From NCBI GenBank assembly GCA_044892525.1, contig CM097888.1, forward strand, positions 64,170,001 to 64,234,000: a stretch of 64,000 nt of DNA, written 5' to 3'. The notes under the pieces are model-generated. The model was given only the letters and a program-made list of their open reading frames with translations, did no database searches and had not been told where the DNA came from. A program made the translations under genes and the position numbers. This DNA comes from Schmidtea polychroa (lineage: Eukaryota). Numbering within the stretch: position 1 is the stretch's first letter; each line of letters opens with the position of its first letter. This document shows, piece by piece, positions 17,901 to 62,900 of the stretch.

Positions 17901-20900
17901 TATTCCACAAAATATGTTAACGACAGACTATATAAAATGTCTTCTTGCTAAACAGCTTCATTTCTATTTATCCTTAGAATACAAGGTAATATATTATCAT
18001 TTCAAAATGATTTTTATGCATAATTTAGATACTATTTGAAGAGTTGCAAATAAATGATGTCATACTTTGTAAAGCATTATCTGAAAATGAGGATTCAAGA
18101 ACAATTATTATTGGATGGCAAAGTCAAATGAATGATGAAATATTGGGTTATATATATATTTTTACTTATATTTTAGAATTATAAATATATCTCAGGAATA
18201 AGAGAAGCAATAAATGAAAACTTGATCAATGTAGAATATCAAACTTGTAAATGCAATAGAGAAAACAAAGATGAAATGAGTTGGAAAAACGCAATCGAAG
18301 AGAAACTAATGATTGCATGTGAAATTAATAAAAACATGATTACACCGGAATATATGAAATGTCTAATAGAAAGTAACACAAATGAATACATAAATACAGA
18401 TGAAATGGAAATCCTCGGAGCAGTAAATACATCGAATAATAAACTATTGGAAACAAATGAAGCAATTGAGGCAAATATATTAGATTTGCATGGACATTTA
18501 TTTATGGATGAATTATCAAACCATTTGATACCATTGAGACAAGCAATTGACAATGGATATGTATTGGCAAAGAAAAAAGATTTGGATTGTAAATTGCATC
18601 GAGTATTTGTTGGATCTGTAAAAGTTGGTAAAGACCAAACCGAAATGAGCTTAGAAGAAGCGATAAAAGCGAAAGTTATTGATCAATTAGAAAATGTTTA
18701 CAGAATCGAAGAAGAAAACATAGAAATACGAATAATGGATGCGATAATGTTGGGAATAATAAATATTGAAAACAAAACTGATGACGAAGAAATCAATTCT
18801 AAATCTTTTGCAATTGTACAAAGGAAACCGACTGATCCGGAAATCGAAGAATTATGTGAATATTCATCAAATAAAGAATTGAACATGAAAATATTGTGCA
18901 GGGCAATTGAATGTGATTGCATGAATGAATTTCTGATTTACGATGATGTGAAAGAAAGTATTGCGAAAAGCATATTCAACAATCATTTAGAACTAGATCC
19001 AATGATTTGTGATGTAGGCGAAGAAAAGCAAAGTATCCTAAAAGGATTCGTAAAGGGCTTGATCGATTATGAAGAAATGAAACGGTTGTTAGAAAATGTG
19101 AAAGATTTATTTGTCGGAGAAATATTAAAAACGATTAATGAAGATTCAAATGGAAAAGAAATAATGAAAGAATTGAATAGTGATGAAATGAAAGATCGAT
19201 ATGAGGAAATGTTAATAATTGATGAAAAGAATTTCACAATAGAAAGTGTATCAAATATTGATGAAAATGATGAGAATAAGAAATATCGAACAAAGATTAA
19301 TGTTGGAAAATTATTGAAAAATCTTAATCAATTGAAATGTTTTGATAAATTTGGAATCGACACAATTGGGAATGCAGTAATTGGAAGGAATGAAGATAGA
19401 AAGGAAGAGTTTGAAATGACAATATTTGAATCAGTAATGAATGGAACTTTTGATTTGGATGAATTGGAAACATTTGATGAGAAAGAAAAAGAAATGTGTT
19501 CAATGATTGAAAGTGTGAAACGAGGACTGATTGATGTGAAAACGGCAGAAAATATTTTGGATTGTTTAGAATCAATGAGCTTTGAAGAACTAATAAAAGC
19601 CAAAATATTTGACATTGAAAACAATTGTTTTGATGAAAATTTGTCATTGGAAGAAGCGATTGAAGAAGATTTGTTGAAACCAGAAGTTGTATATATGAAT
19701 TTATGTGAAGGAAATAAATTAATAAATTTAAGTAAAATGATTGAAAGTGGAATGTTGAATGCTTCGGAAAATGAAGTGAAGATCGAGAAAAGAAATGGCG
19801 AAATAGTTGAAATGAAATTGAATGAAGCACTGAAGGAAGAAAACGGAATATTGTCATGTGCTGTCAATAGTGAAGAAATAAAATTTCAAATTCCAAGAAC
19901 AATAAAATCTCTACTAAATGATCAAATGATCAAAAAATATATGGGTATTATTTTTGAAGAATCTGAAATGCATGAAATGACCATAAATGACGCTTTAGAG
20001 CAATCTTTATTAAGTGAAGAATGTTTCGTCCATTATGATAATAGGTTAGCAATAGTTTCATATCGCGGAGATAAAAATTGTTTTCACTTACTAAATATGC
20101 TGAATGAGTTAGCCAAAGTTCTCAAAGAATATTTATTTACTTCAGATATTGATAAAGATGAAATAATAGTTTTCAAAGTAAATATCATTTGTTTCTGAAA
20201 TTATTATTTTTTATTTGATCAATTAAGATTATGAGAGAAAAAATTGAAAATCTTTTTCTAAAAGATTGTAATTTCATTGAAAAAGTTGAACAGACTTTGA
20301 ATGTCGATCTCACAGTTCCGGAAATTAGAAATCTCAAATTGAAATATGAAGAAGTGAAAGAATTAATGGATGAAGTATGTTTTGTAGTTGATAAATATGG
20401 CAGTTATGGAATTTTGAGAACTTTGATCATTAGTATATAAAATTGTAAAAAAATTCTTAAAATATAAATACAAACGTAGTGAGATTATTTGAAATTGTAA
20501 AATTAATAAAAGCTCGCAACTCCGAAACATTTGAGGTTACCATTACAAAGTATTTTTTTTACTATTATTTTTTACTATTATTTCTTTGAAAAACATATTG
20601 CTTACTATTTTTGTCGTTACAAATCCTCTGTTATTTTGTACAATTTTCATGAAAATTTCTTTAAGCTTAATAATTTAGAAATACTAAGACATAGTAATAA
20701 GGAATGGGTATCTTGTTAATTTTTGGAATGTATTAAACTGTATTAAAATGTTCATTTTCACTCACGTGCAAGCTTACAAAATCCGATATAAAATTTATTT
20801 ATTTTTGTTAAGTATCTTGGGTATCTTGCGAATGAAATTACAAGGGTTTTCATTATTATATACCCATGTCTTCATTTTAATATTCCAATGTTTTCATAGT

Positions 20901-23900
20901 TATATTCCCATATTTTCATAGTTATATTCCCATGTTTTCATAGTTATATTCCCATGAAATTGATATTATTTAAATTCATGACAAAATATATTTAATCATG
21001 TGAATATACAAATAATAGGTTATTCTTTCTTAATTAAATAAATAAATCGTTGAAACAGAATTATTCTATAAAAATCTTAAAAACTTAATTAATTTTATAA
21101 ATGGGGAGGAAAACAAGAAAAACCGTAACTCGAGAATTATTTGATTTGGTTTGCACTTTATATGCAACAAATCGACATAGTATAGCTGAGATCAGCAGAA
21201 TAGTAAGTCTAGAGAGAAAGACTGTCGAGAAAATAATAAGACAGCACTAAAATAATGAACCTTTTGTTCCTGCTGCAGAGAAAAGGTCCAACACAATCTT
21301 AACCAGAAACAACAATTTCTCAGAAGTAGAACAGACCATTTTCAACTCTTTTGCGATCGAAAATTCGCATGTTCAAAACGATGTCAAAAATATCATTCAA
21401 GAAAGACATAATGTGACTCTAAGCTTGCCTACAATCAGTCGAAAAATCAGAAAAATAGGATTGAGTAGAAAGAGGTTGACATTGGTACCAATAGAGAGAA
21501 ATATTGATGCTCGAGCAATTTATGCATCTGAAATATCCAGAATAAACAATGAAAATATAATTTTTTTGGATGAAACTGAATTTAATCAACATTCACGCAG
21601 ATATTATGGTTATTCTGCTGAAAATGTTAAAGCATATGTGCAAGTGCGGGCCAATAAAGGCACTAATATAAGTTTAATGTGTGCTATTGGGTATGAAGGT
21701 GTGATAGCATATGAATATAAAACTGGTGCATATAACTTAGAAAGTTTTATAAACTATATCACTGAGAAGCTATGGCCATATTTTAGGAGGTATCCTCATA
21801 AACTTTTGGTTATGGACAATGCCAGAATTCACAAATTTTCTACCGTATTGCGAACTTTTTCGGATTTGCAAATACCAATAAAATATCTTGTGCTTTATTC
21901 ACCAGAACTTAACCCTATAAAAGAATTTTTTTCTATGATTAAATCACGTTTTCATGGTTTACGATTAAATAATACAGAAAGAACAATCGAAATGTGTTTA
22001 GACGATCTATTAACAGCAGGAACGGATTATCCTAATCAATGCGAGGGTTTTTATCTGAATATGCGTAGGTGGCTAGATAAAGCTTTAAGAAGAGAAATGT
22101 TTATATAAATAAATATTTATACGCTTTATTTTTGTTTATAAATTGTTTTGATATTTTTTTATTTATATAAATATTTAAATATATGTTAACATTTATTTAT
22201 TTTTATGGGAATATAATAATGAAAACATGGGAATATAGGAATGAAAACATGGGAATATAGGAATGAAAACATGGAATATAAGAATGAAAACATGTGTAAT
22301 TATATTTTGTCGTTTTTAAGAAATTTATTTGAAAGGCTTGTGGCATAATGTATAGATTGTATAGCGTTATATAAGTATGTACCTTTTAAAGAGTTTTTAA
22401 ATTTCATATAAATTGAGCAAGTAGGTTGTCATACATTTGAGTTTCAATAAGATGTTTAAGTTCAGGGTAAAAATGTACAATTTTGAAAACTTTACTGTGT
22501 TAAAGGTTTTTGTTAGAAAAGTTTATCAAGGACGAATGTTTCGGGTGAAAGTGCATCTTCATTTACGACTTGCGAAACATAGCGATTCTTCACCACCGAA
22601 AGAAGACAAAGTCCTTTTTATATTCAGGAAATCTTTTGGATTAAATTTTCTTGGATGCAAAGGACATACTTCAAAAATGAGTTACCTCACAAAGAGTCTA
22701 ACATTAAATAACGAGTGTTACTCTAATCTTATAAACTAACTCAATCAAAGCAATCATGATAAAATAGCAGGTTTCTAGAGGAAACTTCATATTCCATCAA
22801 GATAATCTCATCCTATACAAGCGTAATGCAAGATCAAAAATTTAACTGAGTTAATAAAAATTGTCATTACAAGAATAAACACCGCAACTATCAAAAACCT
22901 TAGTAATGGACATATATAAGTGATAATATCAAATTTTAAGCTCCTCTGAAGTTGTTACGTTTAACTTGAATGCCGAATCATATGAATCTTACTAATTTAT
23001 GATGTTTATGTTGCTATAATATATATTTTATAGTTGAAATAAATATTTTAATAAAAAATTTATAATAATAATTTTAACAAGGTTAAGGGTTCTGCTAAAA
23101 ATGATTATTTGGAATATTGGTTTAAAGTTTGCTTTGCAACCGATGTTGAGGTAAATATTAATTTATATAAAAAATGAATATTTTTAATAGGATTTCTTTG
23201 AAATTGTAACAATTACTGAAGTAATACTTTGTGAAGCAATATCCAAAAAAGACGATTACTGTACTGTCATATTGGGCGCTAAACAATGTTACGATGTCAA
23301 TATTATATGTAAATTTATTTTAAATAAAACGAATATTAAATTTTTATTGCTATACAGGTATAGCTGACGCTTTGAAAGTAGGAATCATAGACATTGATAG
23401 CCAAACATATAAATATGATCCAACTCAAAACGATAAAATGTCATGGAAATGTGCAATTTCCGAAAGATACCTTATTGCATGTGAAATTAATAAAAACATG
23501 ATTACACCGGAATATATGAAATGTCTAATAGAAAGTAACACAAATGAATACATAAATACAGATGAAATGGAAATCCTCGGAGCAGTAAATACATCGAATA
23601 ATAAACTATTGGAAACAAATGAAGCAATTGAGGCAAATATATTAGATTTGCATGGACATTTATTTATGGATGAATTATCAAATCATTTGATACCATTGAG
23701 ACAAGCAATTGACAATGGATATGTATTGGCAAAGAAAAAAGATTTGGATTGTGAATTGCATCGAGTATTTGTTGGATCTGTAAAAGTTGGTAAAGACCAA
23801 ACCGAAATGAGCTTAGAAGAAGCGATAAAAGCGAAAGTTATTGATCAATTAGAAAATGTTTACAGAATTGAAGAAGAAAACATAGAAATACGAATAATGG

Positions 23901-26900
23901 ATGCGATAATGTTGGGAATAATAAATATTGAAAACAAAACTGATGACGAAGAAATCAATTCTAAATCTTTCGCAATTGTACAAAGGAAACCGACTGATCC
24001 GGAAATAGAAGAATTATGTGAATATTCATCAAATAAAGAATTGAACATGAAAATATTGTGCAGGGCAATTGAATGTGATTGCATGAATGAATTTCTGATT
24101 TACGATGATGTGAAAGAAAGTATTGCGAAAAGTATATTCAACAATCATTTAGAACTAGATCCCATGATTTGTGATGTTGAAGATGAAAAGAAAAGCATTT
24201 TTATCTCTTTTATTAAAGGAAACATAACCTTAGAAATATTGTATAGGTTTCTATCGGGCCTAAAAGACATATTTCTTGGTGTAATAATAAAAAATCTTGA
24301 TAAGCAATTAAAAGGAAGGAAAATATTCGAAGCAATTGAAGCGTGCAATAATTCTAAATTGAATAATGAAAGTCTGGTAATTGATCAAAAATCTTTTACC
24401 ATTTTAACAGTTTCTAAAATTAACGAAGAAAGCATCTATTTAACATCTATTGAACCTACATCGGTAATAGCTAAACTGAACCAACTTAAGTATTTAGAAA
24501 CATATGGGATTAATACAAATAATTTGTCATTATCTTCTAAGAATAGAGAGCACGAGAACAAATTAAATCAAACAATATTCGAAGCAATAATGAATGGTGA
24601 TTTGAATTTCGATGAATTAGAGATATTTGACTCCAATAACCATGAAATGTGCTCAATTGTTGATAGTGTGGAACGAGGATTGGTAGATGTTCGAACTGCT
24701 AAACACTTGCTAGATCGCATGGAATCATTGACATTCGGAGAATTAATTAAAGATGGAATCTATGATGTACACAATAATAGTTTTGGTGATTTCCAATCAT
24801 TAGAAGAGGCAGTGGAGAATAAACTTGTCAGACCGGAACTCGTTTATCTTAGTTTACCGAAAGAAAATAAATTAATGAATCTAAGTAAAATGATCGAATA
24901 TGGAATACTCGATCCTCTGACAAATGAAATCAGAACACAAAATTCCGAAAATGAAATAATAACAATGAAACTTAATGAAGCGTTGAATTCGGAAAACAGA
25001 ATTTTAGCCACGGATTTGAATTGTCAGCAGATTAAAATGAAATTCCCTGAGAAATTAATAAATTTTGTTGACAAAAAACTTATCGAACCTGATCAAGACA
25101 TTATTCAATTTTCTAATAGTAAAATTGAACCACTTTACATTTCTGAAGCTTTGAAGAAAAGGTTACTGTGCAGGGAGTCACTGGTGAAGTTGTCTGGTGA
25201 TAATTTTGAAAATGAAATCATTATAATTGAATATTGTGGAAGCAATGAACCAGCAAGTCTAATGAATGAACTGAACGAATTATTAAAATATATTGACAAT
25301 TATCTTTCATATTTAACTGTAAGCTCCAGTGAGATTTTACCTAACAATGAAGTAGTGTTTTTCGACTTAAATAATACGTAATTCTCTTCAATTGTAGGAA
25401 ACGACCAAGTTGATTTTGAAAGATAAACAAAGCATTATTCATGATGTTGATGCATTTTTGTCCAAGAATTTAAACAAGGAAGTTAATAAAGAAAAAAGTT
25501 TTTATATTCAAAATCTTAAATTGAAAAATCAGCAAGCTAAAGAGCGATTGGAAGAAGTAATTTAATGTTTAAAAATAAAAATAATTTGTTTTAAGTTGTC
25601 TTTTTAAATCTTCATAACTTTACTAACTACTTCGCGCGGGATTTAGATATTAATTCCTGAAATGATCAAACCTATTTAACCTACTACTTCAACACCTACT
25701 CACGTTTTGTTTTTTTCATCAGTAACATTAAGTATTTTTAATATACGGTTCCTCCTTGACGTATTACCATTAAACTGACTTTTCCAGACTCTTCATGTGA
25801 CTTTATTATTAATCATAACTAGTACTGGCCAAACAAGAAATTGCTATCACCTAAACTAGAATGTTAAATCACTTTAAATTGGAGTACTGGAAATAGAAAT
25901 ACCCCCGTCAAATGGTTTAATAATGACGATATCATTAAAAAAGTAATGCCTTCACAGTGAATTTGGAATCATTCCATAGTTTCCATGGGACAGATTTCAT
26001 TGCTGTATGATGGAACATCTAATTTGTAAGTAAAATTTATATGGCAGAGTTCCATATTCTGATTCACAAACTTCAAAATCTCAATCGAATGCCTAGTTTC
26101 TTAATCTTCAGCTTTGGTTGTAATTGTTTTATATATCAAACCCAAACTAATGAAATTCCAACTGATAACAAGAAGTCTAGTGTAATGTATATTAAAACAT
26201 TCCAGATTTATTCAACTAGGAAGAAACTATCAAATTCCGAAAACCACGAACTCTGATATTCGTTTTGAAATGCCTATTCCAAGAAAGAGTAGTCATATTA
26301 AAATATCAACATCATAACATTCATAATCCAATAATATCTCAAAAAAAGAATGGCGAGATACACTGAAAATAGTCGCATTCACCGTGAAATCAAATAGGGT
26401 TTCTTATGTAAAAATTTCGAGACACCAAACTCATTGTTCGAAATTATTTGTTGGTTCATGCATATGTTACACCGAATCCATAAAATTGCCGAATACATTA
26501 AATCGGCAAATAATTGCTTAATTCATGAAAAATCCAAGTTTTTACAGAGAAATTCTTTCGGGCGATTTATGAGGAACTTATTTTACGTATTTCTGTACTA
26601 TTAAGGATGATGTCTTTTGTCACTGTTGATTGATCAACTTGATAAGATGTATTATATTTAGAAGTATTTGTTAACTTATCATTATAACATGTAGAACCAT
26701 GAGAGTTTATTAAGCGAAAGAATAATAAAATTTTACATAATTTGATCTGCTTAAGAGAGCAATGAAAATATTATGACTGCAGTTCGAACGAAATAACTGT
26801 AACTTGAGGTGTGGTGAAATGAGAATTTAATATTTGAAAATAGAAAACCAGCAAGTCTAAATTTTCAAATAAAAATCATTCATTTTCTATTAAAATTAAG

Positions 26901-29900
26901 ATTCAACATTTAATATAAAAAGTTAATAAAGAGTGACGAAGAACGAAGAATTTTCTAATAGGAAATTGACAATAGACACCAATGATAAACGATGAAAAAT
27001 ATAAAAAAAACAATTTTCAAGCTATTATTGATATAATCCAATGTACATAAAATAGTATGTGTAATTATTAAAAGACAAGCGCATAATTGAGGGAAACTCA
27101 ATTAATTACCTGATATTTGCAAAGTTTTGATTAGGAAATTTATCGACGTTGTTTTGGACGATGAGAATAGACTCGAAAATCCATAAAATACGAAATAAAA
27201 ATAGTGCAATACAGAAATTTTTATTAATGAAGTTATTAATTTCGTAGTATTATTTATTAATCTCCATAAATATTAAAATAAAAATCATTTTCATTGAAAA
27301 TAGTATTAGTTATAACGAAATCACATATAATCATCATGGAGTTAATCATAGAATTAGTGATTTGGATGTATATATTAAAAAATATAAGAAAATGGCATAA
27401 AGAATTTTCAAAAAACGTTCAACATCAAATTTTAGTTCAAAATAAGAACTTTATGGGTATGTTATGTCATGATAATTCTTCAGAATTATATTAAAATATA
27501 CAATATTATAATGAAAATATATATCAAGAAAATAGCTGAGCATTTCCAATATGATAAAATATATATTTGTTAATTAATTTATTTAATTGACGCCAAAAAT
27601 ATAAAAAAAATAGTAATTTCAGTAAATTGAATAAATATTATTTTTAGATCAAAGAAATAATAGGAAATGACCAATGGAATAAATGGTTTCACGTCCATTT
27701 TGGAAATGAAAGAGAAGTACATTTTTATGTGTATAAATTAGCTTTCAAACACTTTTTAGATATCGCCATCAGAAGACATGGTAAAAAGTAGAATTTTAAA
27801 GTACGAGGCATTATCTGGAAATGAAAATAACGAAACGATTATTATTGGTGTGAAACTTAAAAATGCAGATGAAATAATTAGTAAATTCATTAATTTTATT
27901 TTCGAAATAATATATATTTCTATGTATCAGGTATTGAGGAAGCAATTGTTGAAAACTTGATCAATGTAGAATATCAAACTTGTAAATGCAATAGAGAAAA
28001 CAAAGATGAAATGAGTTGGAAAAACGCAATCGAAGAGAAACTAATGATTGCATGTGAAATTAATAAAAACATGATTACACCGGAATATATGAAATGTCTA
28101 ATAGAAAGTAACACAAATGAATACATAAATACAGATGAAATGGAAATCCTCGGAGCAGTAAATACATCGAATAATAAACTATTGGAAACAAATGAAGCAA
28201 TTGAGGCAAATATATTAGATTTGCATGGGCATTTATTTATGGATGAATTATCAAATCATTTGATACCATTGAGACAAGCAATTGACAATGGATATGTATT
28301 GGCAAAGAAAAAAGATTTGGATTGTGAATTGCATCGAGTATTTGTTGGATCTGTAAAAGTTGGTAAAGACCAAACCGAAATGAGCTTAGAAGAAGCGATA
28401 AAAGCGAAAGTTATTGATCAATTAGAAAATGTTTACAGAATCGAAGAAGAAAACATAGAAATACGAATAATGGATGCGATAATGTTGGGAATAATAAATA
28501 TTGAAAACAAAACTGATGACGAAGAAATAAATCCTAAATCTTTTGCAATTGTACAAAGGAAACCGACTGATCCGGAAATAGAAGAATTATGTGAATATTC
28601 ATCAAATAAAGAATTGAACATGAAAATATTGTGCAGGGCAATTGAATGTGATTGCATGAATGAATTTCTGATTTACGATGATGTGAAAGAAAGTATTGCG
28701 AAAAGCATATTCAACAATCATTTAGAACTAGATCCAATGATTTGTGATGTAGGCGAAGAAAAGCAAAGTATCCTAAAAGGATTCGTAAAGGGCTTGATCG
28801 ATTATGAAGAAATGAAACGGTTGTTAGAAAATGTGAAAGATTTATTTGTAGGAGAAATATTGGAAACGATTAATGAAAATTCAAATGGAAAAGAAATAAT
28901 GAAAGCATTGAATAGTGATGAAATGAAAGATCGATATGAGGAAATGTTAATAATTGATGAAAAGAATTTCACAATAGAAAGTGTATCAAATATTGATGAA
29001 AATGATGAGAATAAGAAATATCGAACAAAGATTAATGTTGGAAAATTATTGAAAAATCTTAATCAATTGAAATGTTTTGATAAATTTGGAATCGACACAA
29101 TTGAGAATGCAGTCATTGGAAGGAATGAAGATAGAAAGGAAGAGTTTGAAATGACAATATTTGAATCAGTAATGAATGGAACTTTTGATTTGGATGAATT
29201 GGAAACATTTGATGAGAAAGAAAAAGAAATGTGTTCAATGATTGAAAGTGTGAAACGAGGACTGATTGATGTGAAAACGGCAGAAAATATTTTGGATTGT
29301 TTAGAATCAATGAGCTTTGAAGAACTAATAAAAGCCAAAATATTTGACATTGAAAACAATTGTTTTGATGAAAATTTGTCATTGGAAGAAGCGATTGAAG
29401 AAGATTTGTTGAAACCAGAAGTTGTATATATGAATCTATGTGAAGGAAATAAATTAATAAATTTAAGTAAAATGATTGAATGTGGAATGTTGAATTCTTC
29501 GGAAAACGAAGTGAAGATCGAGAAAAGAAATGGCGAAATAGTTGAAATGAAATTGAATGAAGCACTGAAGGAAGAAAACGGAATATTGTCATGTGCTATC
29601 AATAGTGAAGAAATAAAAAAGCAATTTCCAAGACAATTGAAAGACTTGTTAGCAAATGAAGAAGTCAATAAAGAGAATGACATAATAATATTTCCTGAAA
29701 CAAGAATAAAACCAATGCTGATAAATGATGGATTAAAGAACGGTTTGTTGAATGAAGAATCAATGGTGAAATTAATTGAATATAATTTGGAAAGCGGAGT
29801 AAATTCAATGGAATATTGCGGGGATGCAGAAATTGCAGATCTCATCAATGATTTGAATGAATTATCAATGATATTACCTGAATTATTAATGAGTTTGAAA

Positions 29901-32900
29901 AATGGAGAAAATGAAGATGGGATGGAAGTAAATGATAAATAAATGATAAATATAATTTAATAATAATAATTGAACATAGATATTAGAAACATATGTGAAA
30001 TCAAGAATAGATGAAAAAGTGAATTTATTTGATCGGATCAATGCATGTCTGTGTGATGATGTGGATAATGGAAATGTTGATGATGTGAGACCCGATGTGA
30101 AGGAGTTAAAGGCGAAATCTGATAAAGTTAAATCTCTATTTAATGAGGTTTGCTTAATTTATTTTTATTCAATTTAATTTGAAACATTTATCGATTACAC
30201 ATTTTTATTATTGTATACATTTTTTTATTTAATAGAATCGATATTTTTTATTACATAATTATAATCAATTTATTTAAGTAGTAAAACAAATTATTTTCTT
30301 CCTTTCACGAAAACCATAATTTTTATGAATATATATAATTAAAAGTCTATCCTAAAGTTTTATCAATGCAACATATAAAAACATTTAGCGCTAATTTCAT
30401 AAAAAAAAATTAGGAATGCAATTTCCTTGTTTTATTATTTAATTTCTTTATCTAAAATTTAGTAATTATTAGACTTATTCAAGAAATGTTTGCTTCTTTG
30501 TCTTTATGTGCGTTTTCTCTTAAAAAGATTGATTTTGAGTATGATATCGTTAAAAATCTCGGAAATGGAATTTTGTGTTGACAAGAATATTATTAGCGAA
30601 ATTCGTAAGAACATGTTTGACTATATTACACTTCTACACCAAAATGAGCCTGGCGTCCTACTTTTGACACAAATAGACCAAAAGATACCAAAAGTAATTT
30701 TTTGAGAATAAATTTTAATTAGTCAACAGAGAAGACGGAAGAGTTATTCCCACGTAAATCGTGTTTGATGTCTTGCTTATAATTTTCATAATTCCTATAT
30801 TCTTCTTAAATAAATAAATATATCTTGTGAAAACTATAAACCAATAGCACGTTCCATACATTACATTGATATATGAAAATTAGTTGTAAGTTATTTAATA
30901 TTTTATAGGATATTGACATTGCTAGTCTAAATCTTCATATGAAACTTATACAACATCCATTTGGGAAAATATTTAGTTATACACAAACATTGAAAAATAT
31001 TATTTTCTAAAAATTCTTCTGAAAACTTCATTAAACTTTAAAATTAAAATATGTACTAAAATTTACAAAATAATATTTATTTTTAAATGTATATTTAGAT
31101 ATTAGGAGCTTGAACTTTATGTTTAGAGTTGGGCTGTAATTCATTAAAAGCTTCGTAAAACTTATCCCCACGCGCTTCCTAAGTTAACTAAAACATATAA
31201 AGTCAAATTAGAAAGACATGTAACGAAACTATTTTGAATCGTTTGATATATATATACGAAGAAAATGGTTACAAGGTTGCTGAAAACATCTTACAGTTTG
31301 CTGTTTTGTAACAAGGACTTCAGCAAAATAAAATATCAAACAAAATATTAGGAAATTTAAAATAACTACTTCTTTGAATTATCATATTAATGAGAGCCAG
31401 GTTACAAAAGTCCCACATAAATGAGCGGAGTCTCGTATTATGCATATATTCATAAGCTTTATATTTCACTGTGCATCTCAAAGTTCGAATCCAGAAATTA
31501 AAAATTGCATTTGTTGACAATATTCATAATCATACGATACTAGGAGACAAAAACTACTACAAGTTTGCCTGATTAAATTAATGGAACGTCATGAAGCTAT
31601 CATGAACACTAAAATTGAACGATGCAGTGATTCTTAGTTTTGGAACAATTAAGTTTTTTGTAAAACTGAGATTCGTCTATTACCGCAATTTTTGAATAAT
31701 TTGTTCTGTTAATTTGATTTTATAATATCATCATTAGGCATGTCAAATATATTTGTGAGTACTTTTTTTGTTTCAAATATTGAAAAATTGTGTTTTGACC
31801 TCTTAACTGACCTAAACTTGGTTGAGTATATAAGAGTCAATTAGATACCGTTCGCAAAACATTAAATTTTTCTTTTAAAGAGATTTATGAACAATGGTGC
31901 ATGAAAGATAATTGTAATATTAACATTAAAAAGCTAAATACTGCAACTACAAAACATTAAAGTGCAATGCTCCAACTGATTATATTGAAAAGTATTTCAG
32001 AAATATTTTCATTCTCCTAGTGAAAATAATTCTTCTCTGGAGCTTTTGTAGTATAATTTCGAATTAAGTAATTCAAGAGCTTTGTAAAATGAAAACTGAA
32101 TTTTATTCTCCGAATTTTTATAAAAATCTTTTGACTTATTTAATTTGCATAATACTAATTTTATCGGTTCAATTCGACCTACCAAGATCAAATCTCAAGC
32201 ACGTCATTTGTAACGGTTTCAGATATATTTTATTTTGTAATAAAATTTGACAATTTATTTTATTATTCAATGATAAATAAAAATTTTTTAGAGATGGTTG
32301 ATACTTTTACAAGTGATTTATTAGCATTCCTGTACAGAAAACTTTAATAAACCAAATGTTACTTTAATTGAACTAAAAAGTTACAAACTGATTTTGCTTC
32401 ATCATTATGTTGAGGATACCTAAAATAGTTATTAAAAGGATTGAAATAATTGAAATAAAATAAACAAATAAGAAAAAATATATTGTTTCAGACTCCTAAA
32501 AGGCAAGAGGAAAAAAATTCGGAAAATAAGAAAAATAATTGTAGAAAGAATAGAATACAACAATTGATTAGATAATAAAAAGTAACTTATTAATTTTCAA
32601 ATGCAAATCAAAACAAAATTTGGAAAGTGAAAAACAATCAAAAAAGGAATTGTTATTATTTCCACTGTTTGTCTGAGATTACGAAGCAAATAAGAGTAAA
32701 ACACTAAAAATTCGTTTGTTAACCAAAATCATTCATAATACAATGTTTGGACAAACAACCAGATTATCAAGATATTGTTCAATATTATAAAGTTAAAAGA
32801 GAAAGCAAAACTAAGTACGACAAAATTTTAAACAGAAAATGTATAAGTAGTGAAAACAAATAAAGGGAAATCATAATTGAGATAGGGGTTTAGAGATTTT

Positions 32901-50900: not shown

Positions 50901-53900
50901 GGAAATAGAAGAATTATGTGAATATTCATCAAATAAAGATTTGAACATGAAAATATTGTGCAGGGCAATTGAATGTGATTGCATGAATGAATTTCTGATT
51001 TACGATGATGTGAAAGAAAGTATTGCGAAAAGCATATTCAACAATCATTTAGAACTAGATCCCATGATTTGTGATGTAGGCGAAGAAAAGCAAAGTATCC
51101 TAAAAGGATTCGTAAAGGGCTTGATCGATTATGAAGAAATGAAACGGTTGTTAGAAAATGTGAAAGATTTATTTGTCGGACAAATATTGGAAACGATTAA
51201 TGAAGATTCAAATGGAAAAGAAATAATGAAAGAATTGAATAGTGATGAAATGAAAGATCGATATGAGGAAATGTTAATAATTGATGAAAAGAATTTCACA
51301 ATAGAAAGTGTATCAAATATTGATGAAAATGATGAGAATAAGAAATATCGAACAAAGATTAATGTTGGAAAATTATTGAAAAATCTTAATCAATTGAAAT
51401 GTTTTGATAAATTTGGAATCGACACAATTGAGAATGCAGTCATTGGAAGGAATGAAGATAGAAAGGAAGAGTTTGAAATGACAATATTTGAATCAGTAAT
51501 GAATGGAACTTTTGATTTGGATGAATTGGAAACATTTGATGAGAAAGAAAAAGAAATGTGTTCAATGATTGAAAGTGTGAAACGAGGACTGATTGATGTG
51601 AAAACGGCAGAAAATATTTTGGATTGTTTAGAATCAATGAGCTTTGAAGAACTAATAAAAGCCAAAATATTTGACATTGAAAACAATTGTTTTGATGAAA
51701 ATTTGTCATTGGAAGAAGCAATTGAAGAAGATTTGTTGAAACCAGAAGTTGTATATATGAATCTATGTGAAGGAAATAAATTAATAAATTTAAGTAAAAT
51801 GATTGAATGTGGAATGTTGAATTCTTCGGAAAACGAAGTGAAGATCGAGAAAAGAAATGGCGAAATAGTTGAAATGAAATTGAATGAAGCACTGAAGGAA
51901 GAAAACGGAATATTGTCATGTGCTATCAATAGTGAAGAAATAAAAAAGCAATTTCCAAGACAATTGAAAGACTTGTTAGCAAATGAAGAAGTCAATAAAG
52001 AGAATGACATAATAATATTTCCTGAAACAAGAATAAAACCAATGCTGATAAATGATGGATTAAAGAACGGTTTGTTGAATGAAGAATCAATGGTGAAATT
52101 AATTGAATATAATTTGGAAAGCGGAGTAAATTCAATGGAATATTGCGGGGATGCAGAAATTGCAGATCTCATCAATGATTTGAATGAATTATCAATGATA
52201 TTACCTGAATTATTAATGAATTTGAAAAATGGAGAAAATGAAGATGGGATGGAAGTAAATGATAAATAAATGATAAATATAATTTAATAATAATAATTGA
52301 ACATAGATATTAGAAACATATGTGAAATCAAGAATAGATGAAAAAGTGAATTTATTTGATCGGATCAATGCATGTCTGTGTGATGATGTGGATAATGGAA
52401 ATGTTGATGATGTGAGACCCGATGTGAAGGAGTTAAAGGCGAAATCTGATAAAGTTAAATCTTTATTAGCGCAGGTTTGTTTAATAATCATTATTTCTTT
52501 ATAATATTTTAAAAGTATTTATTAAACTTTTTGTTATTTTTTATTTCTAATTATTTAATATCTTATCTTTAATTATTTCTTTGCCAACGAATATTAATAT
52601 AGTATTTAAATTATTAATTGTTTGTTTATTTGTGAATGCAATGTGTTTTTCTGTTGCTGTATTTTTAAGTTAAATCCCTATTGGAGACAATTTGCTAATA
52701 TTATTTGCATATTCCAATTAGTTTTTAATAATTTTTTTTTCAATTTAAACTTTAGTTTTGTCATATTTTATAACAATCATAATATTTTGTTTAATAGATT
52801 TTATGTTCTTTCATCCATATGATGTTCTTTTTTGATTTTTATCTATTTTGAAAAATATATACTGATTTGAATCGTATTTCACAAGTATGTTCAAAAATTT
52901 TTATTTTTTATTTGAAATGAAAAGATCGTTAATCTTTTAAATGTTAAGTTTAAATTTTTCGAATTGAAATTTGGTGATTGTTTGACTTTTTTATATATTT
53001 TTTAATGAGTTGTTTAAACTCAGAATATTTTTTAATGTAAATTATTATAAGAACTTTTTTCAATTTTCACCTCTGATTTCTTTTCAATTGACATCGTATT
53101 TATTAAAAAATGTTGACTATTTATTGATTCATTGGCAAAATTTTCTAACAATTACAATGTTAAGTAACTTAGATTGTTTAAATTGAGTTTATTAAGTTAA
53201 TGAATAAATATTGTTTATTTATAAAAATGAATTTAATTTAATTTTCAGTTAATGTACCTAGGAAATAAGGTATAGGCAGGCCCGGCTTTACTAATGAAGC
53301 AGAAGATGCAAAGCATCGCGGCCCTACACGAACAACGGGCGCTAAAATCCGAAATTTAAATGAAATTATTTATTTTTCAAATTTAAATTTTTTTTCAAAT
53401 TTAATTTTTTTATTGAATGACAGATGAAAAGTAGGCGATTTTTTAATACAGATTTCCAAAAAAAGTTTTTGGTTTTTTTCTTTAATTGTAAGTACTTGTT
53501 TTCAGTTTTTTATGTGTTCCAGTAATGTTTGGACATTGTTAATATTTTCAATTTTTATTGAAGAACAATTTTTGTGAATGTAAAAATTATATATTTGTTG
53601 TTTGAAATATTTAATAACAAAGTTTAAAAAGTGTAATTTTTTGAATAACAAAATTTTTGTGAATGTAAGTATATTATAGTGATTTTTTTATTTTTACTTA
53701 TTATTTTGTCAATAAAGTATCTTTAATATTAATTGAGTAATGGTGAAAGTAAGTATCACTAATAGTACTAATTTTTTTAATGCTTCCACAAAAGTTGGGA
53801 TGTTTTAAATCAATATAGCAAAATAACGCTTAAACCTTTATCGGATACACGATGGGAATCAAGAATTGATGCTCTTAGTCCATTAAAAAACAATATTGGT

Positions 53901-56900
53901 GATTATTTAGAAGATTTACTTGCCGTCCATGATAATGACAGAAATGACAACAACACAAAATCTGAAGCTAAATCTTTGGCACTGAAGCTTGACTACGAAT
54001 TTGTTTGTTCGCTAATAATTTGGTACGACATTCTAAGCAGGATTAATGTTGTGAGCAAGATGCTTCAATCTTCAAGTACCAACCTAAATGAATCAACAAA
54101 TAGTTTAAATAATTTAATAACTTTTTTAAAGAATTTCGTTTAGATGAAAATTTTAATAATATACTTAATAAAGCTACAATTTTGGCACATGATATTGACA
54201 TAGCTCCTCAATTTAAAGAAAATTCATTACGTAGGCGTAAAAAACGTATGTTTAAAAACGAATGTCGAGATGAAAGACCGACAGACCTGGAAAAAAACTA
54301 TAAAATTTCACTTTTTCTTCCAATTGTTGACAGTGCAATTAACTCAATAGTCGAAAGATTTGAACTTATGAATAGTCATGCCGAAAAGTTTCAATTTCTC
54401 ATAAATTTTAATGAAATTTATAATTTGGATAATGAGATACTAAGAAATAAATGTACAGATTTACATAAAGATTAAGATATTGATATAAGTTCTTCAGAAT
54501 TATGTAACGAACTGTGTATATTTAAAGACACCATAACTCAACTTAATAGTTTTTATCCATTAGATATATTGCAGTATATTTATTCAAATGATTTATTTGA
54601 TATATTCCCAAATATAGTTGTATCTTTGAGAATATTATTAACACTACCAGTCTCAGTAGCAGCTGGCGAAAAATCATTTTCCAGACTTAAACTAATTAAG
54701 AATTATTTACGCTCAACCATTTCTCAAGAAAAATTAGTTGGCCTGTCTCTGATTGCTATTGAAAGCGATATCTATGACAAAATCAAAATTAATGATGCAT
54801 TGGATGAATTTGTTTCCATAAAAGCAAGAAAAATAAAATTTTAAATGAAACATTGTGGTTTTCTAATTTATATATATAAGATTTCTGTTTATTTTTTTTA
54901 TGAATTAATGTTTAATTATACAGTAAATCTTTTTAATAATAAAATTATAATACTTGACTGTGAAATTTGAGTTTTATTTCTGACATAATTTCCTATAAAA
55001 AGCGCTTAACAGAAAGTTGCATCGGGGCGCCAGCACCGCAAGAACCGGGCCTGGGTATAGGTAATTTTTTTATTGGCCAGTAGTTCTTTTATATATCCTA
55101 AATAAGAATACATATACATTTTTCTAATGCCCAGTTAAACATATCAGCATATTCTTTTTTCATTTACATACATTAGTTTTAATTTTTAAAAAACTGGTAA
55201 GTTTTTCCATCTCTACCGCGCGACTAAGTGTTTGAGGCCAAAATGTTCCATACTTGACAATATTGATGTTATGATTTTAATGAATAAATCTTTAATTAAA
55301 TTCAAAGACTTTTTAATACGACCGTAGCTTGATTTAATTGATGCATTAATCATATTCATGACTGTATAATGATTCTGAATTGATTTAGTCTTTTTTTGCT
55401 TCTGTTTCACATTAGCTTTTGGAAAGCACTTAAAACAAAATGATTCGATATTTGACTCGTTGTGAATTGGACCATTAACCAGTTTGTCACTGACAGATTT
55501 AATGATGTCTTTAATATTACCTATAGCCTACTGTGTCAGTTCTTGAGCATTGCTGTGTGATTGAAAAATAAAACTTCCTTATTGAAAATTCGACATCGTT
55601 TGCAGAAGATTCCACCGTAGTCAGAACATTTGTATGTTCTGACTTCATCGTTGGTACAAAGCATGGATTTTGTATCAATATCTTCTAATTCTAATTTGTG
55701 TTTGAAGTCTAGTTATAAGCAAAGATGATTCAGAGTTAATGGCTGAGAATTTGAAAGAACGGTTGTAAATTCACATTTCAGATACTTCATTTGACTGTAA
55801 TTAACTCTCTATACCAATAAATTATATGAGAGCCCAGGTCGTCAACTGGCCACATTTCCAAAAAACGCCGTAAATATAGTCGTTTGCAAAACGTTGCTAT
55901 GTTAGTTAACATCAGATATGCGCATACAGCTTGCGACTATTTTTATTGTGTAAAATTTAATTTTTAATATATATTGCTACTTATATTAGTGCGTGTGTTG
56001 ATAAGTAATAATCTGTAGTACCCAGTAAAGTCACCTCTAAAAATTGTGACGGGACAGCTGAGGTGATTGTGTGAGATACAACAATTGATAAGAAAAATTA
56101 TGATTAACGTAACTTTATTTGATTAAAAAACAAAAACTGATAACTTATACATCTTCTTAAATTCATAATATTTTGTAATCCACCATAAAAAATTCGAAAA
56201 TTACATATAACTTCAGAATTTGTTCATTAGTTATTATTTCTATTTATTTTTTTCTATTCGTCAATTTTTTATTTGTTTTGTATTTTTGTAATTCCCTATC
56301 GTAATAATTTACTATAAAGAATTACACTATATAGTTATATTATATTTTTATACAATATACATAATAATAATCAAAATAACAATACATTACATATCCTAAT
56401 TACAATTAAAAATAAATTAACACCACTATTAAATTAACACTACACTACTTATTAAAATAATTGTAAAATTGACGTATTATACAACCTACGTTTTAAATAT
56501 CTATATCTCTTTAAAAAATATGAAGTTTATTTCTAAAGTGGTTCCACCGATATAGCTTCGGATGACTGGGCAAGTATATAAATATGAAGCCAATTTACAT
56601 TATGTTCATGAACAGTTAAGGTGCAGTAAAACAATAAGTAAATGGAAGTTTGAAGATTTTCATAACATTTACAATATCAGCAAAAGATAAAAAGAGAACA
56701 AGATGATGGTGAATTTAAAAGTAAATCGACTTAATCCAATGTATGTATAAATTCAACAGTTTTTCCAGTGTGTTTAAAAGGCCCTGTTAATAATAATCAG
56801 TTAATAATATACTAATATTTATTTTTAATACAAATACAAATTATTACCTAAATCTGGTATTATTAAAACACCGAATTTAAATGGCGAATTAATTAATTAA

Positions 56901-59900
56901 ATAATAATGCTAATTATGCGTGCCAGCATTTATACTTATTATACTTTTACTTATAATACAATATATATTTTATTTATAAATTAATTATTTAAATATCCCT
57001 AACAGGCCGTAAAAATATTTCAAACAATAAATAATCAATTAGTTAAACATCATTTTTATATAGACCACAATTTTACTAAACAATTATCCAAAGTAAGAAA
57101 AAGGTAGTTAAAAAACTGCAAAGTAAAAGAAATCTCACAAAATCTTCATTTTCCAAATGGAAAAAAATCATTAAGCAACACAACTATTTTGTGGCCACTA
57201 AAAAATATTGTTAAACTAGAAACATCATTTATAAATGGTGAATATATGAACAATGTTTTATTAAAATACCGAAAGATCTTTTCTGTGATTTTACAAAGAA
57301 ATCAGAAATGATTACAAAAAAATAAAAATACGTTATTATCGACTAAGCTGTAAGGAACAAACTTTTAGGAATGGTGCAAAATATAAAAAGTTAGCACGAA
57401 AACGATCTAATTTCGGCATCGAGAATCCTAATAGCATGTGAAGAATCATACTTGGTACGTTCAATATGAACCCAGACTAGATGCTAAAAGAAGCTAACAG
57501 GAACGGTAAGACAAAGGGATGTAGGCTTATTTTTTAAAAAAAGATCCATTGATGTCCATACCTTCTTTCAGCAATTCAAAAGATCCAAAACGGCAATTTA
57601 GAAGAAAATATATGGCTTTGAATTTTCAAGAAAAGTTCAAATTCATATTACAAATTTGGAGAAATTCCCTCACAGATGTTTCTTCTTATGTCTGAATAAA
57701 TAAAAGTCGCTGAGCGCAAGATCAGGACGGTAGGGAGGGTGATCTAAAAAAATAAATCTATTTGTCTCAATTATTGTCATTGTTTCCGCATTTTTGTGGA
57801 TTTGGGAGTTGTCTTGAAGGGGCCATAGAGAAGACCTAGTGGCTTTAGATGATTACGTCTGTATGTGCCCACGAGTTTGTTGTAGTTGCTTGAAATAATA
57901 TGCAGACCTTTTCAGAAAAATACGTACAGGTCATGTAACTTTGACCTTGAAAAATTGTCAACATCAATGAATTTCGATGACATGTTCCATATATTATGTT
58001 CCTAGAACTCGTTTCTCCAGGGAATATTTATTCGCTGGACTCACGCTTTGTCTCAGAAACATACTGGGATAAAGGAGGTTCACCAACAGTATTGATATTT
58101 CCGAGTAATTAGTCACCATGTTCTTCAAAAGTGAGAAGGTTAACCTTTGCAGTATTACTTCATGTTTTCAAGTTTTCAAAGAAAAGAAAACGTAGGAAAA
58201 ACTTGGATGCTCAATTTTCCTAAGCCAGATTCATTAAGAATGACAGCACACCTCCGGTACTGACATTCAACCGCTGCGAGATATTCTTGATAGTAATTCG
58301 CCGTTCTTTTACAATTTGGAAACATTCCTTTCTTTTGAAGTCAGAACACTGACTGGTGAACATGCTTGAACTGACGAATCCAATCGAAGATTGTATTACG
58401 AGAGGAGCATATTATCTCCATAAGTTGTTTGAAACAAATTTCATATTAGCTAACTGTTATCACCAAGCAAAACCAAGAATTTTATCACACTTTGATACTG
58501 ACAGGATGTTAAATGATTTAAAAGTTAATTGAAAATATACTCTACCACACCGCTATGCAGGTGAACAAGGTATATTTTTATAATCACATATTAAATATTA
58601 TGATTCTTTCTTATGAGTAAACACACTAAGTATGTCAATATGTAAACTATCAATGACCTCAAAAAGAATAATTAGACAAACCGCCAATTGCAAGAAAAAC
58701 GAGTCGAAAAATTGAATAAACGGTTACCAATTTCCTGACATTAAAAAAATGAATATTAACGAACTTATATTTATTGAGACAGTTCGGACACTGACCAAGA
58801 AAAACACAAGAATCGAAATTCGTTTCTTCATTTAAAGAACATATTTTGCATGATGCAGTTTATTTTCACTATATAATTCATCAATATTTACTTTGTTTAT
58901 AAACCTTTCGATAAAATATAATGATAGTGATAGAGTGGGTTATACAAATTATATACAAATAAGGCTAAGACCGTTAAATCATCAGTAATTTTGTGAACTT
59001 CTTAAAAAGTCAATTTCTAATATTTCTATCTTTCAATAAAAGTGGCTTTTGCAGGTAAAAGAGGTCACAAACAGTACAACTTTACTTCCTTATTTACGTT
59101 TCTGCATTAACCTACTCCGAAACAAAACGGTTAAATGTAATAAGGTTAATAAATTTTTAAATTGAAATATAATTTCCAAGAAATCTTTCTAGACAATGTT
59201 TATCATTATTTGAAATTATTTTTCAAATAAAATTTCACAGATAATTCATCTATATATTTAGATAAGTGATCAAAGAAATTGTGACAAACTCCAAAATTGG
59301 TTTGCTATTCATATCGGAACCAACTTTCAAGTTTTTATTAAATGCTTTTAAATGCAATGAAACGTATTTTTGTAGAATCTTTTAGAAAATGTAGAAATCA
59401 CTGAAGTGATAAAATGCGATGCAATATCTGGAAATGAAAATAACAAAACGATTATTATTGGTGTGAAACTTGAAAATGCAGATGAAATAATTAGTAAATT
59501 CATTAATAATTTTATTTACGAAATAATATATATTTCTATGTATCAGGTATTGAGGAAGCAATTGTTGAAAACTTGATCAATGTAGAATATCAAACTTGTA
59601 AATGCAATAGAGAAAACAAAGATGAAATGAGTTGGAAAAACGCAATCGAAGAGAAACTAATGATTGCATGTGAAATTAATAAAAACATGATTACACCGGA
59701 ATATATGAAATGTCTAATAGAAAGTAACACAAATGAATACATAAATACAGATGAAATGGAAATCCTCGGAGCAGTAAATACATCGAATAATAAACTATTG
59801 GAAACAAATGAAGCAATTGAGGCAAATATATTAGATTTGCATGGACATTTATTTATGGATGAATTATCAAATCATTTGATACCATTGAGACAAGCAATTG

Positions 59901-62900
59901 ACAATGGATATGTATTGGCAAAGAAAAAAGATTTGGATTGTAAATTGCATCGAGTATTTGTTGGATCTGTAAAAGTTGGTAAAGACCAAACCGAAATGAG
60001 CTTAGAAGAAGCGATAAAAGCGAAAGTTATTGATCAATTAGAAAATGTTTACAGAATCGAAGAAGAAAACATAGAAATACGAATAATGGATGCGATAATG
60101 TTGGGAATAATAAATATTGAAAACAAAACTGATGACGAAGAAATCAATTCTAAATCTTTTGCAATTGTACAAAGGAAACCGACTGATCCGGAAATCGAAG
60201 AATTATGTGAATATTCATCAAATAAAGAATTGAACATGAAAATATTGTGCAGGGCAATTGAATGTGATTGCATGAATGAATTTCTGATTTACGATGATGT
60301 GAAAGAAAGTATTGCGAAAAGCATATTCAACAATCATTTAGAACTAGATCCAATGATTTGTGATGTAGGCGAAGAAAAGCAAAGTATCCTAAAAGGATTC
60401 GTAAAGGGCTTGATCGATTATGAAGAAATGAAACGGTTTTTAGAAAATGTGAAAGATTTATTTGTCGGAGAAATATTGGAAACGATTAATGAAGATTCAA
60501 ATGGAAAAGAAATAATGAAAGAATTGAATAGTGATGAAATGAAAGATCGATATGAGGAAATGTTAATAATTGATGAAAAGAATTTCACAATAGAAAGTGT
60601 ATCAAATATTGATGAAAATGATGAGAATAAGAAATATCGAACAAAGATTAATGTTGGAAAATTATTGAAAAATCTTAATCAATTGAAATGTTTTGATAAA
60701 TTTGAAATCGACACAATTGAGAATGCAGTCATTGGAAGGAATGAAGATAGAAAGGAAGAGTTCGAAATGACAATATTTGAATCAGTAATGAATGGAACTT
60801 TTGATTTGGATGAATTGGAAACTTTTGATGAGAAAGAAAAAGAAATGTGTTCAATGATTGAAAGTGTGAAACGAGGACTGATTGATGTGAAAACGGCAGA
60901 AAATATTTTGGATTGTTTAGAATCAATGAGCTTTGAAGAACTAATAAAAGCCAAAATATTTGACATTGAAAACAATTGTTTTGATAAAACTTTGTCATTG
61001 GAAGAAGCGATTGAAGAAGATTTGTTGAAACCAGAAGTTGTATATATGAATTTATGTGAAGGAAATAAATTAATAAATTTAAGTAAAATGATTGAATGTG
61101 GAATGTTGAATGCTTCGGAAAACGAAGTGAAGATCGAGAAAAGAAATGGCGAAATAGTTGAAATGAAATTGAATGAAGCACTGAAGGAAGAAAACGGAAT
61201 ATTGTCATGTACTATCAATAGTGAAGAAATAAAAAAGCAATTTCCAAGACAATTGAAAGACTTGTTAACAAATGGAGAAATTGATTACAATCAAGATCTT
61301 ATTTGTTTTGGGAACACCGTTTTAGAAATGAGATTGAAAGACGCTTTTGATAAAAATCTTGCAAATCTGGAATCTTTTGTAATTTTAACTGATAACATTT
61401 CTCATAACGCGAAGAAAGTTTTTTACTATGGGAATAATAATTTAATCGATATCATGCTGGGCTTATATTATCTTGGATGTAATTTATCAGAAATTCAAAA
61501 GAAGTGTGTCAGTGAAGATATGAATTTAAATAATTTTGATGTTTGTTTAATTTCTTTTTGTTTGTTTTTTAATTTATTCATAGGCGGTTTTCTCCGAATT
61601 CCAATTATTATCCGAGGAAAAGCATATATTATTTAACAAATTTAACGAAATGCTTAGCGGCTATTCTCCATCATCTGTGAAAAACATGACATCCGACATG
61701 AAGAATCTTTGTTCTCGAAAGGAAGAAATTGATTCACTATTTCATGATGTAAGTTTTGTAGTTCTTTTAATTATCACTTTAAATATTTTTATATTTATAT
61801 TTTTTATTTATTTGGTTTACATATTTAACTTATATGTTATATAATTTGTATAAATTATATTGTTATACTTGCTGCTGTGTATATATCCTAAGTCATGTTT
61901 CTATTATCATTTGAAGTGTTTTTGATTTTTTCCTTTTTAATAATATTATTATATTATCATTATATATCAGTATATTAATTAATAGAAAATTAAATACTTC
62001 TGTTACCAAGATGAATTGCCACTGCGAAAAGATGTATTTTACTTTAATTCACCATCAATCAACAATTGAATCCCCTCTTTAATGTCTTGCGAGGTATCGA
62101 AAATAAATGTTAAATCTTTGCCAAAATGTATAACACTCTGACATAGTTCCTTTGCTGTCAATACAATTTCACCTTATGCCTTTAATTAAGAAATATTTAT
62201 GTCTAAATTATAAATAATTAAACGATTAATGAGTATTGTCACTGGGATTTTTAAAAATAAAAATTCAACTGAATTTATTAAAAATATAATATAAGATACC
62301 AATTCTTTATATTGTATTATCAACAATAATGTGAGTTTGTATCTCATTTAAGAAGTCATATTATTTGGCCATTAAAAGTATTTGTATGTGTATTAAAAAT
62401 TTTTTGCCTTAAATTTAATATAACACATGATCCATTTATTCAATAAACAAAAGGTTAGCTTCCAAGAATTTTATAATTATTTTATATATAGTTTCTAGAC
62501 AACATTTTGAAAAAAATTTAATAAAAATTCCATAGAAAAATTTGTGCATTATCGAATTCAGATAATCGCGTATTATGTTTAAACTGTAATCAATTTTTCT
62601 TTCCTTTTCTTTCACACTTCGTATCAAGTGAAGAATGAGAAAGGAGAAGATTCAATGAGAAAAGAGATGGATTAAAATCAGAAAAATCTTGGTTTTGTAT
62701 AAAAACAGGACATATTTTGGGTCGAAATTCTTTCAATTAATAAACACTGAGGATATATCTTACCTATTTATTTATCTGATAATTTTCCACTGAAAATTTT
62801 ATTATATTATATATATATTAATAATACATATTTTTTAAAATAGGTTCAAGAATCTATGTTAAATTACAAAGTAACATTGTCAGAAAATCAGAATTCTTGT

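Follow-up and report, generated by a model that had tools for sequence, protein, structure and literature searches.

Near-identical exon blocks in a plakin-repeat gene of Schmidtea polychroa: a probable product of intragenic gene conversion bounded by unrelated introns

How can seven exon blocks of one gene be almost identical, down to their silent sites, when most of the long introns between them have nothing in common? The question is raised by a stretch of 64,000 nucleotides (nt) from Schmidtea polychroa (Eukaryota; NCBI GenBank assembly GCA_044892525.1, contig CM097888.1, positions 64,170,001 to 64,234,000 of the forward strand), hereafter the window, in whose own coordinates all positions are given. 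The window holds the plakin-repeat part of one large plus-strand cytoskeletal linker gene. An earlier reading of the letters alone (the original prediction) had proposed that old duplicates are kept alike here by repeated ectopic gene conversion confined to the exons. Our analysis shows that the modules are old and that their near-identity is young and layered. The modules have very probably been kept near-identical by intragenic gene conversion, bounded by the lost homology of their introns, together with one unequal crossover.

The window is AT-rich (~27% G+C), and a purine skew on its plus strand marks seven stretches of ~2 kb. Repeat finding and self-BLAST recovered a single repeat unit present seven times (anchors at 18240, 23402, 27975, 34122, 40269, 50302 and 59591), with an open frame of ~660 codons in each copy. 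A full module consists of four exons, of 69 (a), 118 (b), ~1,997 (c) and 147-168 nt (d), which are separated by mini-introns of ~40-54 nt, and each module encodes ~750-785 residues. Modules are spaced by long introns of 2-7.5 kb. The four-exon plan, the frame and the AG/GT junctions hold in M2, M3, M4, M5, M6 and M7, and exon plan and intron phases are the same across modules; M1 is without the 69-nt exon a and is preceded by a truncated piece, M0.

17773-17979, plus strand: M0, a truncated and diverged module fragment that lies ahead of M1 exon b and resembles the beginning of exon c
18029-20374, plus strand: module M1, exons b 18029-18146, c 18196-20177 and d 20228-20374; 2,247 nt, no stops, AG/GT throughout
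23082-25556, plus strand: module M2, exons 23082-23150, 23191-23308, 23358-25351 and 25398-25556; 2,340 nt in frame, mostly diverged
27648-30147, plus strand: module M3, exons 27648-27716, 27760-27880, 27931-29927 and 29980-30147; frame checked
33793-36294, plus strand: module M4, exons 33793-33861, 33907-34024, 34078-36074 and 36127-36294; mini-introns of 45, 53 and 52 nt, coding total 2,352 nt, in frame
39940-42441, plus strand: module M5, exons 39940-40008, 40054-40171, 40225-42221 and 42274-42441
49973-52474, plus strand: module M6, exons 49973-50041, 50087-50204, 50258-52254 and 52307-52474; frame and splice sites checked
59262-61748, plus strand: module M7, exons 59262-59330, 59376-59493, 59547-61540 and 61584-61748; 2,346 nt in frame

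M0 matches residues 62-131 of the M4 module at 30% identity (tblastn, E 7e-9), and its open frame reaches a GT donor. Lying in frame before M1 exon b, it is the degenerate first unit of the array, which escaped homogenisation. The array is expressed and spliced as assembled: RNA contigs from two independent studies contain the mini-intron joints 27716>27760, 27880>27931 and 29927>29980, all GT..AG. A circular module cDNA contig of 2,350 nt has exon d spliced to the next exon a via the expected 110 letters, and another RNA contig, from run X7, continues from M2 sequence into M3 exon a. Because RNA contigs span the module joints, the modules are consecutive parts of one transcript.

Tracts of near-identity were mapped by self-BLAST, seven-way alignment, sliding identity, lists of differences and boundary alignments. 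Within the tracts the modules are 98.5-99.9% identical. At the tract edges identity drops from ~100% to 50-60% over a few nucleotides, and the limits, which vary between modules, are sharp to the base.

18215-19883, plus strand: M1 tract (M4 coordinates 34097-35765), both ends inside exon c; 12 differences from M4 in 1,669 nt
23474-24178, plus strand: M2 patch of ~705 nt (M4 34194-34898), inside exon c; 11 differences from M4 and 7 from M7
from 27797, plus strand: near-identity of M3 to M4-M7 (from M4 33941), starting inside exon b
50085-52462, plus strand: M6 tract (M4 33904-36282), starting at the acceptor of exon b, crossing two mini-introns and ending 12 nt short of the donor of exon d; 15 differences from M4 in ~2,378 nt
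~59276-61275, plus strand: M7 tract (M4 ~33807-35805), starting 15 nt into exon a, crossing two mini-introns and ending within exon c

The sharp limits that had been proposed for M1, for M6 and for the 3' end of M7 were recovered to within a few bases by self-BLAST and alignment. At the 5' end of M7 homology begins at 59256, and the first 14 nt of the 69-nt exon a contain 4 differences. All tract limits fall within the exon block or very close to it, at most 6 nt ahead of the exon a acceptor and 11 nt past the exon d donor; the long introns contain none of them, and the mini-introns are crossed by tracts. Inside the M6 and M7 tracts the mini-introns are identical. The idea that homogenisation is confined to exons therefore survives in a modified form: it is the exon block that bounds the tracts, and this block includes the mini-introns, not exons alone.

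The anatomy of the array is a mosaic. In M1 and in M2 the tract is confined to exon c: diverged exon c sequence borders it on either side, and the introns beyond are unique. For the M2 patch this bordering sequence is ~40% diverged. Old diverged homologous sequence also stands beside the tract of M7, where it is found towards the 3' end of exon c and in exon d, and in M3, where it covers exon a and the beginning of exon b. M6 carries an intermediate layer, its exon a being 75% identical to that of M4 and its a-b mini-intron ~70%, and this layer too ends at the exon a acceptor.

What lies between the exon blocks is of a different kind.

20375-23081, plus strand: long intron I1, with a decayed Tc1/mariner element at ~20836-22301 (DDE_3, PF13358, E 2.6e-21)
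25557-27647, plus strand: long intron I2, single copy, with no similarity to the other long introns and single-copy depth in runs X1 and X8
30148-33792, plus strand: long intron I3, duplicated as I4
36295-39939, plus strand: long intron I4, the copy of I3
42442-49972, plus strand: long intron I5, with a frameshifted hAT element at 46124-47910 (minus strand) and a piggyBac-type fragment at 48534-48857 (plus strand)
52475-59261, plus strand: long intron I6, with a fragmented hAT element at 53781-54841 (plus strand; Dimer_Tnp_hAT, E 9e-10)

No collinear similarity was found among I1, I2, I3, I5 and I6 at word size 7, only short fragments, and the best intron-intron matches were inverted transposon pieces common to I5 and I6. 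The last 100 nt of the long introns are 53-56% alike, compared with 53 +/- 2.4 for shuffled sequence. The similarity of I6 to I3 is 63% over the downstream 100 nt, and BLAST gives a weak extension to 52560; this may be weak residual similarity and was not counted as homology. The transposons differ as well. The Tc1/mariner element of I1 has inverted ends of ~100 nt that are 83-85% alike (20836-20959 versus 22298-22201) and a 285-codon DDE_3 frame, and looks old yet not heavily broken. The elements of I5 match Dimer_Tnp_hAT, DUF4371 and DDE_Tnp_1_7. The hAT remnants of I5 and I6 are unrelated to each other, and these remnants and the piggyBac fragment are each split over several frames. The original prediction had named I1, I2, I5 and I6 as introns without visible homology and with different old transposons, and this holds for the homology of all four and for the decayed elements of I1, I5 and I6. 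It had also taken detectable intron homology of an age matching the exons as one observation that would speak against it. Such homology is absent from the four introns it listed, and present between I3 and I4, which it did not list and which differ at 1 position in 3,645 nt (31799); this pair is accounted for below.

The contrast between tract and surroundings is strongest at silent sites. Between tract-bearing modules, synonymous divergence (dS; Nei-Gojobori) is 0.007-0.07 inside the tracts, and outside them it ranges from 1.5 to saturation: it is 1.6-1.8 between M2 and the other modules outside the M2 patch, and towards the 3' end of exon c, comparisons among M1, M2, M7 and M3-M6 give values from 1.8 up to saturation. 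Synonymous divergence is thus more than 20-fold lower inside the tracts. Could purifying selection, whether it acts on the protein, codon usage or splicing signals, produce this pattern with no exchange at all? The modules are coding and expressed, and non-synonymous divergence (dN) is below dS in most comparisons, as selection would have it. However, selection of these kinds would have to hold synonymous sites and whole mini-introns constant in the tracts, while in M2, a module that is expressed as well, these codons are saturated, and the shared variants form incompatible patterns. Identical mini-introns in particular rule out selection at the protein level, in line with the earlier claim that homogenised synonymous positions are more than such selection can explain. 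We consider selection without exchange scarcely credible.

A second possibility is that the modules are recent duplicates of a whole unit whose introns were later replaced by transposon insertions and deletions, with no conversion. Whole-unit duplication does occur in this array, as M3-M5 demonstrate (see below), and the long introns do hold transposons. Yet insertions interrupt homology and do not erase it, and there is no collinear similarity between the introns even at the exon edges. Moreover, the near-identity ends within exons, next to homologous coding sequence that is saturated (dS >1.5), in M1, M2, M3 and M7; such limits indicate that the tracts overwrote the interiors of existing paralogues and are not newly inserted copies. 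The I1 mariner, its ends ~15% diverged, looks older than the tracts. The age of the modules is also seen in M2, whose unconverted part has 43% protein identity to M4 and clusters by maximum likelihood with homologues from other organisms (P0001, P0003), not with modules of its own genome (support 90/91). Recent duplication is, on this evidence, very unlikely.

We therefore favour exchange among old modules, and its traces are visible in the variants that the tracts share. For every pairing of M1 or M7 with M3-M6, the runs of concordant polymorphic sites were longer than in any of 2,000 permutations. This run-length test is blind to the M2 patch, where the seven copies agree and leave no polymorphic sites, so the M2 patch rests on the dS contrast and the boundary alignment. 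In the assembly, seven variants are private to M7 and five to M6. Within the 1,670 nt of common tract, 10 informative sites among M1, M3, M5, M6 and M7 gave 21 incompatible pairs out of 45 in the four-gamete test, and the minimum number of recombination events (Rm) was at least 3. Exchange was therefore repeated and took place partly over short tracts. The proposal of repeated ectopic conversion of old duplicates is borne out by the mosaic and by these incompatible pairs, with one part of the array standing apart: the block M3-M5 stems from a single unequal crossover.

This block shows a periodicity of 6,147 bp over 27797-42452, or 2.38 periods, and ends at 42446-42452, 5-11 nt past the last donor of M5. 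M3 and M4 differ at ~19 positions, all of them in the 5' 1.1 kb (27797-28878), and M4 and M5 at 6, all from 35540 on. M4 is a chimera that joins an M5-type 5' part to an M3-type 3' part, the two meeting somewhere between 35025 and 35540. Taken together with the near-identity of I3 and I4, these differences point to one unequal crossover between neighbours that were already similar. Before it, the array had six modules and zero long-intron homology. In the course of events that we propose, the ancestors of M3 and M5 would already have been homogenised when a very recent unequal crossover between them created M4 and the duplicated 3.6-kb intron. Relative to single-copy I2, the depth of I3 is ~2x in run X1 and ~1x in strain X8; contig depth alone thus suggests that the M4 duplication may be polymorphic in copy number. 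As a separate observation, 3 substitutions in 5 nt of exon c (42065-42069) distinguish M5 from M3, M4 and M6 and change KLIE to NFFE; the cluster has the look of a multi-nucleotide mutation, or else of a very short patch with an unseen donor.

Near-identical repeats of 2 kb are a classic source of polishing errors, and X1 may be the very sample that was assembled, which raises the possibility that the identity is an assembly artefact, either a consensus collapse or the result of polishing with reads mismapped between paralogues. Independent reads speak against this. Contigs of X1 have a depth of 4.6-8 on I2 and of 44-53 on the seven-copy core; depth is 27 for a contig over the six-copy and four-copy parts and 10.8 on I3, steps that fit seven, about five and two copies. 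X8 is an independent strain, with 26 letters different in 1,265 nt of I2 (~2%); its depths are 37, 314, 254, 180-200 and 26-33, the core being collapsed into contigs at 5-8.5 times single-copy depth. The depth steps of both X1 and X8 agree with the assembled copy numbers. RNA contigs from 2016-2017 have the same module cDNA and the 3' limits of M7 and M2. One contig of X7, an RNA run of 2016, stops at 29663, the position in M3 that corresponds to the M7 limit, and the loose end of this contig continues into 3' sequence of the M7 type; another begins inside the M2 patch, ~45 nt short of its 3' end, and extends 1,316 letters further, into M3 exon a. Both limits thus reappear in that run. Polishing, furthermore, is unable to raise identity from 55% to 99% and leave limits that are base-sharp and in frame. 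An artefact of either kind is highly improbable.

The same reads offer a glimpse of the array in other material. At each of 28902, 28946 and 28962 all tract-bearing modules of the reference share a letter that differs from the one in the collapsed high-depth contigs of X8 and X7; contigs of X5 carry the non-reference letter at 2 of these sites. Such strain letters, in collapsed contigs that do not separate single copies, are suggestive of concerted evolution.

How might the exchange work? We infer the repair mechanism, its direction and the limitation by homology as the cause of the boundaries as follows. The modules would repair each other by non-reciprocal ectopic recombination, a break in one being mended with another module of the array as template. 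Repair would replace the resident sequence by 0.7-2.4 kb of genomic DNA complete with its mini-introns. The long introns would have diverged beyond recognition long ago, remodelled by different transposons, and so could serve as no template; as recombination needs homology, a tract would run at most a few bases into them. The restriction to the exon block would then follow because the long introns offer no homology. Later short exchanges inside a tract would maintain 98.5-99.9% identity among the copies and redistribute variants between modules, while the diverged flanks would hold the tract edges fixed.

Two features of the tracts bear directly on this scheme. The M1 and M2 tracts, with old coding sequence on both sides, call for a non-crossover patch, which a single unequal crossover cannot yield. 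The identical mini-introns indicate that the template was genomic DNA. Conversion from an RNA or cDNA template was considered separately and rejected: mini-introns are kept in the tracts, and no tract fuses exon d to the next exon a.

Several observations weigh against conversion as we describe it. G+C at third codon positions (GC3) does not rise in converted segments, being 0.24-0.27 in converted and unconverted segments alike, and a GC-biased signature has been used elsewhere to support conversion (PMC2720389). Next to the tracts of M1, M2 and M7 the sequence is ~40-50% diverged, far more than canonical homologous recombination tolerates; microhomology or rare homeologous repair may have served to found the tracts. 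Only ~40 nt separate the 3' limit of M1 from that of M7 (35766 and 35806 in M4 coordinates), a hint that some constraint is common to both. Finally, contig depth is not equal to copy number, and collapsed short-read contigs cannot resolve positional copies in other strains.

In an alternative reading the tracts were made by replication-based template switching at microhomologies, of the kind described as fork stalling and template switching (FoSTeS) or microhomology-mediated break-induced replication (MMBIR), with later maintenance possibly as under conversion. Base-sharp edges against flanks of 50-60% identity would be natural for such a process, since ordinary strand invasion and re-annealing are inefficient there, and the absent GC-biased signature would not be missed. 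On the other hand, the tracts replace resident sequence in perfect register, at joints without indels, inversions or inserted bases, and homology-driven recombination is at work in this array, as both the clean unequal crossover and the network of short exchanges within the tracts show. We regard template switching as unlikely.

A further possibility, to which we give only a small chance, is that exchange is started or bounded by transcription of the exons, beyond a passive loss of homology. In 2-kb windows within 18000-61750, exon blocks have a GC skew of ~+0.4 and an AT skew of ~+0.22 on the coding strand, and introns have ~0, so that the exons are strongly purine-skewed. Candidates would be R-loop-prone DNA or exon-marked chromatin. 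A transcription-linked mechanism must also explain the tracts between 40-50% diverged flanks and the M1 and M7 3' limits within ~40 nt of each other. Gene conversion bounded by lost intron homology remains the reading that we prefer.

Coding-restricted concerted evolution is well documented, and the array is a very clean example of a known process. Yeast pairs from the whole-genome duplication show it with unalignable non-coding sequence, which has been attributed to selection keeping the coding sequence similar enough for conversion (PMC3924837), and in Caenorhabditis elegans the col-12/col-13 and hsp-16 modules combine near-identical coding sequence with diverged flanks (PMC3924837, PMC3966223). 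Compact introns are often inside conversion tracts (PMC3966223), and loss of homology is the accepted reason for conversion stopping in paralogues (PMC3924837, PMC3966223). The array resembles these yeast and C. elegans paralogues in that old copies are near-identical at silent sites, non-coding sequence is unalignable and compact introns are taken into the tracts. Unlike those pairs, it holds seven modules in one gene and transcript, with long introns between them, its limits are unusually many and sharp, and an unequal-crossover product stands in the same array. In primate red and green opsins, where conversion is ongoing, introns are homogenised and an exon resists (PMC3924837). Both the opsins and this array are mosaics of homogenised and diverged sequence, but with opposite polarity, the exon blocks being homogenised here.

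Arrays of exon blocks within a single gene form another point of comparison. In human LPA kringle IV-2, the triplicated region of nebulin and spider flagelliform silk, homogenisation usually includes the introns, and in flagelliform silk the introns are homogenised even more than the exons. The plakin-repeat array is like these in having multi-exon modules that evolve in concert within one gene, with copy number changing through unequal crossover, as in M3-M5. It is unlike them in that only I3 and I4 are alike and the other long introns are unrelated. In the part of the literature covered, the combination of 'plakin repeat' and 'gene conversion' matched only a paper on a Candida megasatellite, which appears to be unrelated.

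The understanding of concerted evolution is unchanged by these findings. Within 43 kb the locus keeps apart the products of the two processes by which tandem coding arrays are shaped, as non-crossover conversion patches of several sizes and ages and a fresh crossover chimera with its duplicated intron, and the old sequence beside each tract serves as an internal clock. It is thus a natural system for studying conversion tract lengths, the divergence at which exchange halts, and the upkeep of uniform repeats in a giant linker protein. It also carries a warning, as module phylogenies here would falsely suggest recent duplication and short-read assemblies would collapse the array.

The identity of the protein follows from its repeats. 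The Plectin model (PF00681) scores above its gathering threshold in M1, M2 and M3 (27-29 bits against a cut-off of 20.5; M1 29 bits). An exhaustive HMMER search returned 97 homologues, the stronger of which are mostly 2.6-6.2 thousand residues long with 12-20 matched stretches; in two large homologues the Plectin repeat scores are 821 and 898 bits. The Atlas neighbours of the modules are plectin-repeat clusters, and the nearest of these represent several phyla, Rotifera included. Sequence comparison of the modules with solved structures gave no match, and BLASTP found no repeat inside a single module. Plectin repeats are common to this gene and to plakin and spectraplakin proteins such as plectin, desmoplakin, MACF1/Shot and VAB-10, although the match to the Pfam model is weak here (27-29 bits). 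The likeness to these proteins is one of repeats only; the marks of a spectraplakin (calponin-homology domains, plakin domain, spectrin-repeat rod and EF-hand/GAS2 domains) would fall outside the 64-kb window.

Two further features lie outside the modules. After M7, an open frame of 365 codons at 62856-63953 encodes coiled, repeat-like sequence without a significant Pfam match and is probably the next exon of the plakin-repeat gene. Upstream of the array, a direct repeat of ~360 nt (3957-4315 and 10145-10492, 94% identity) is probably a dispersed element.

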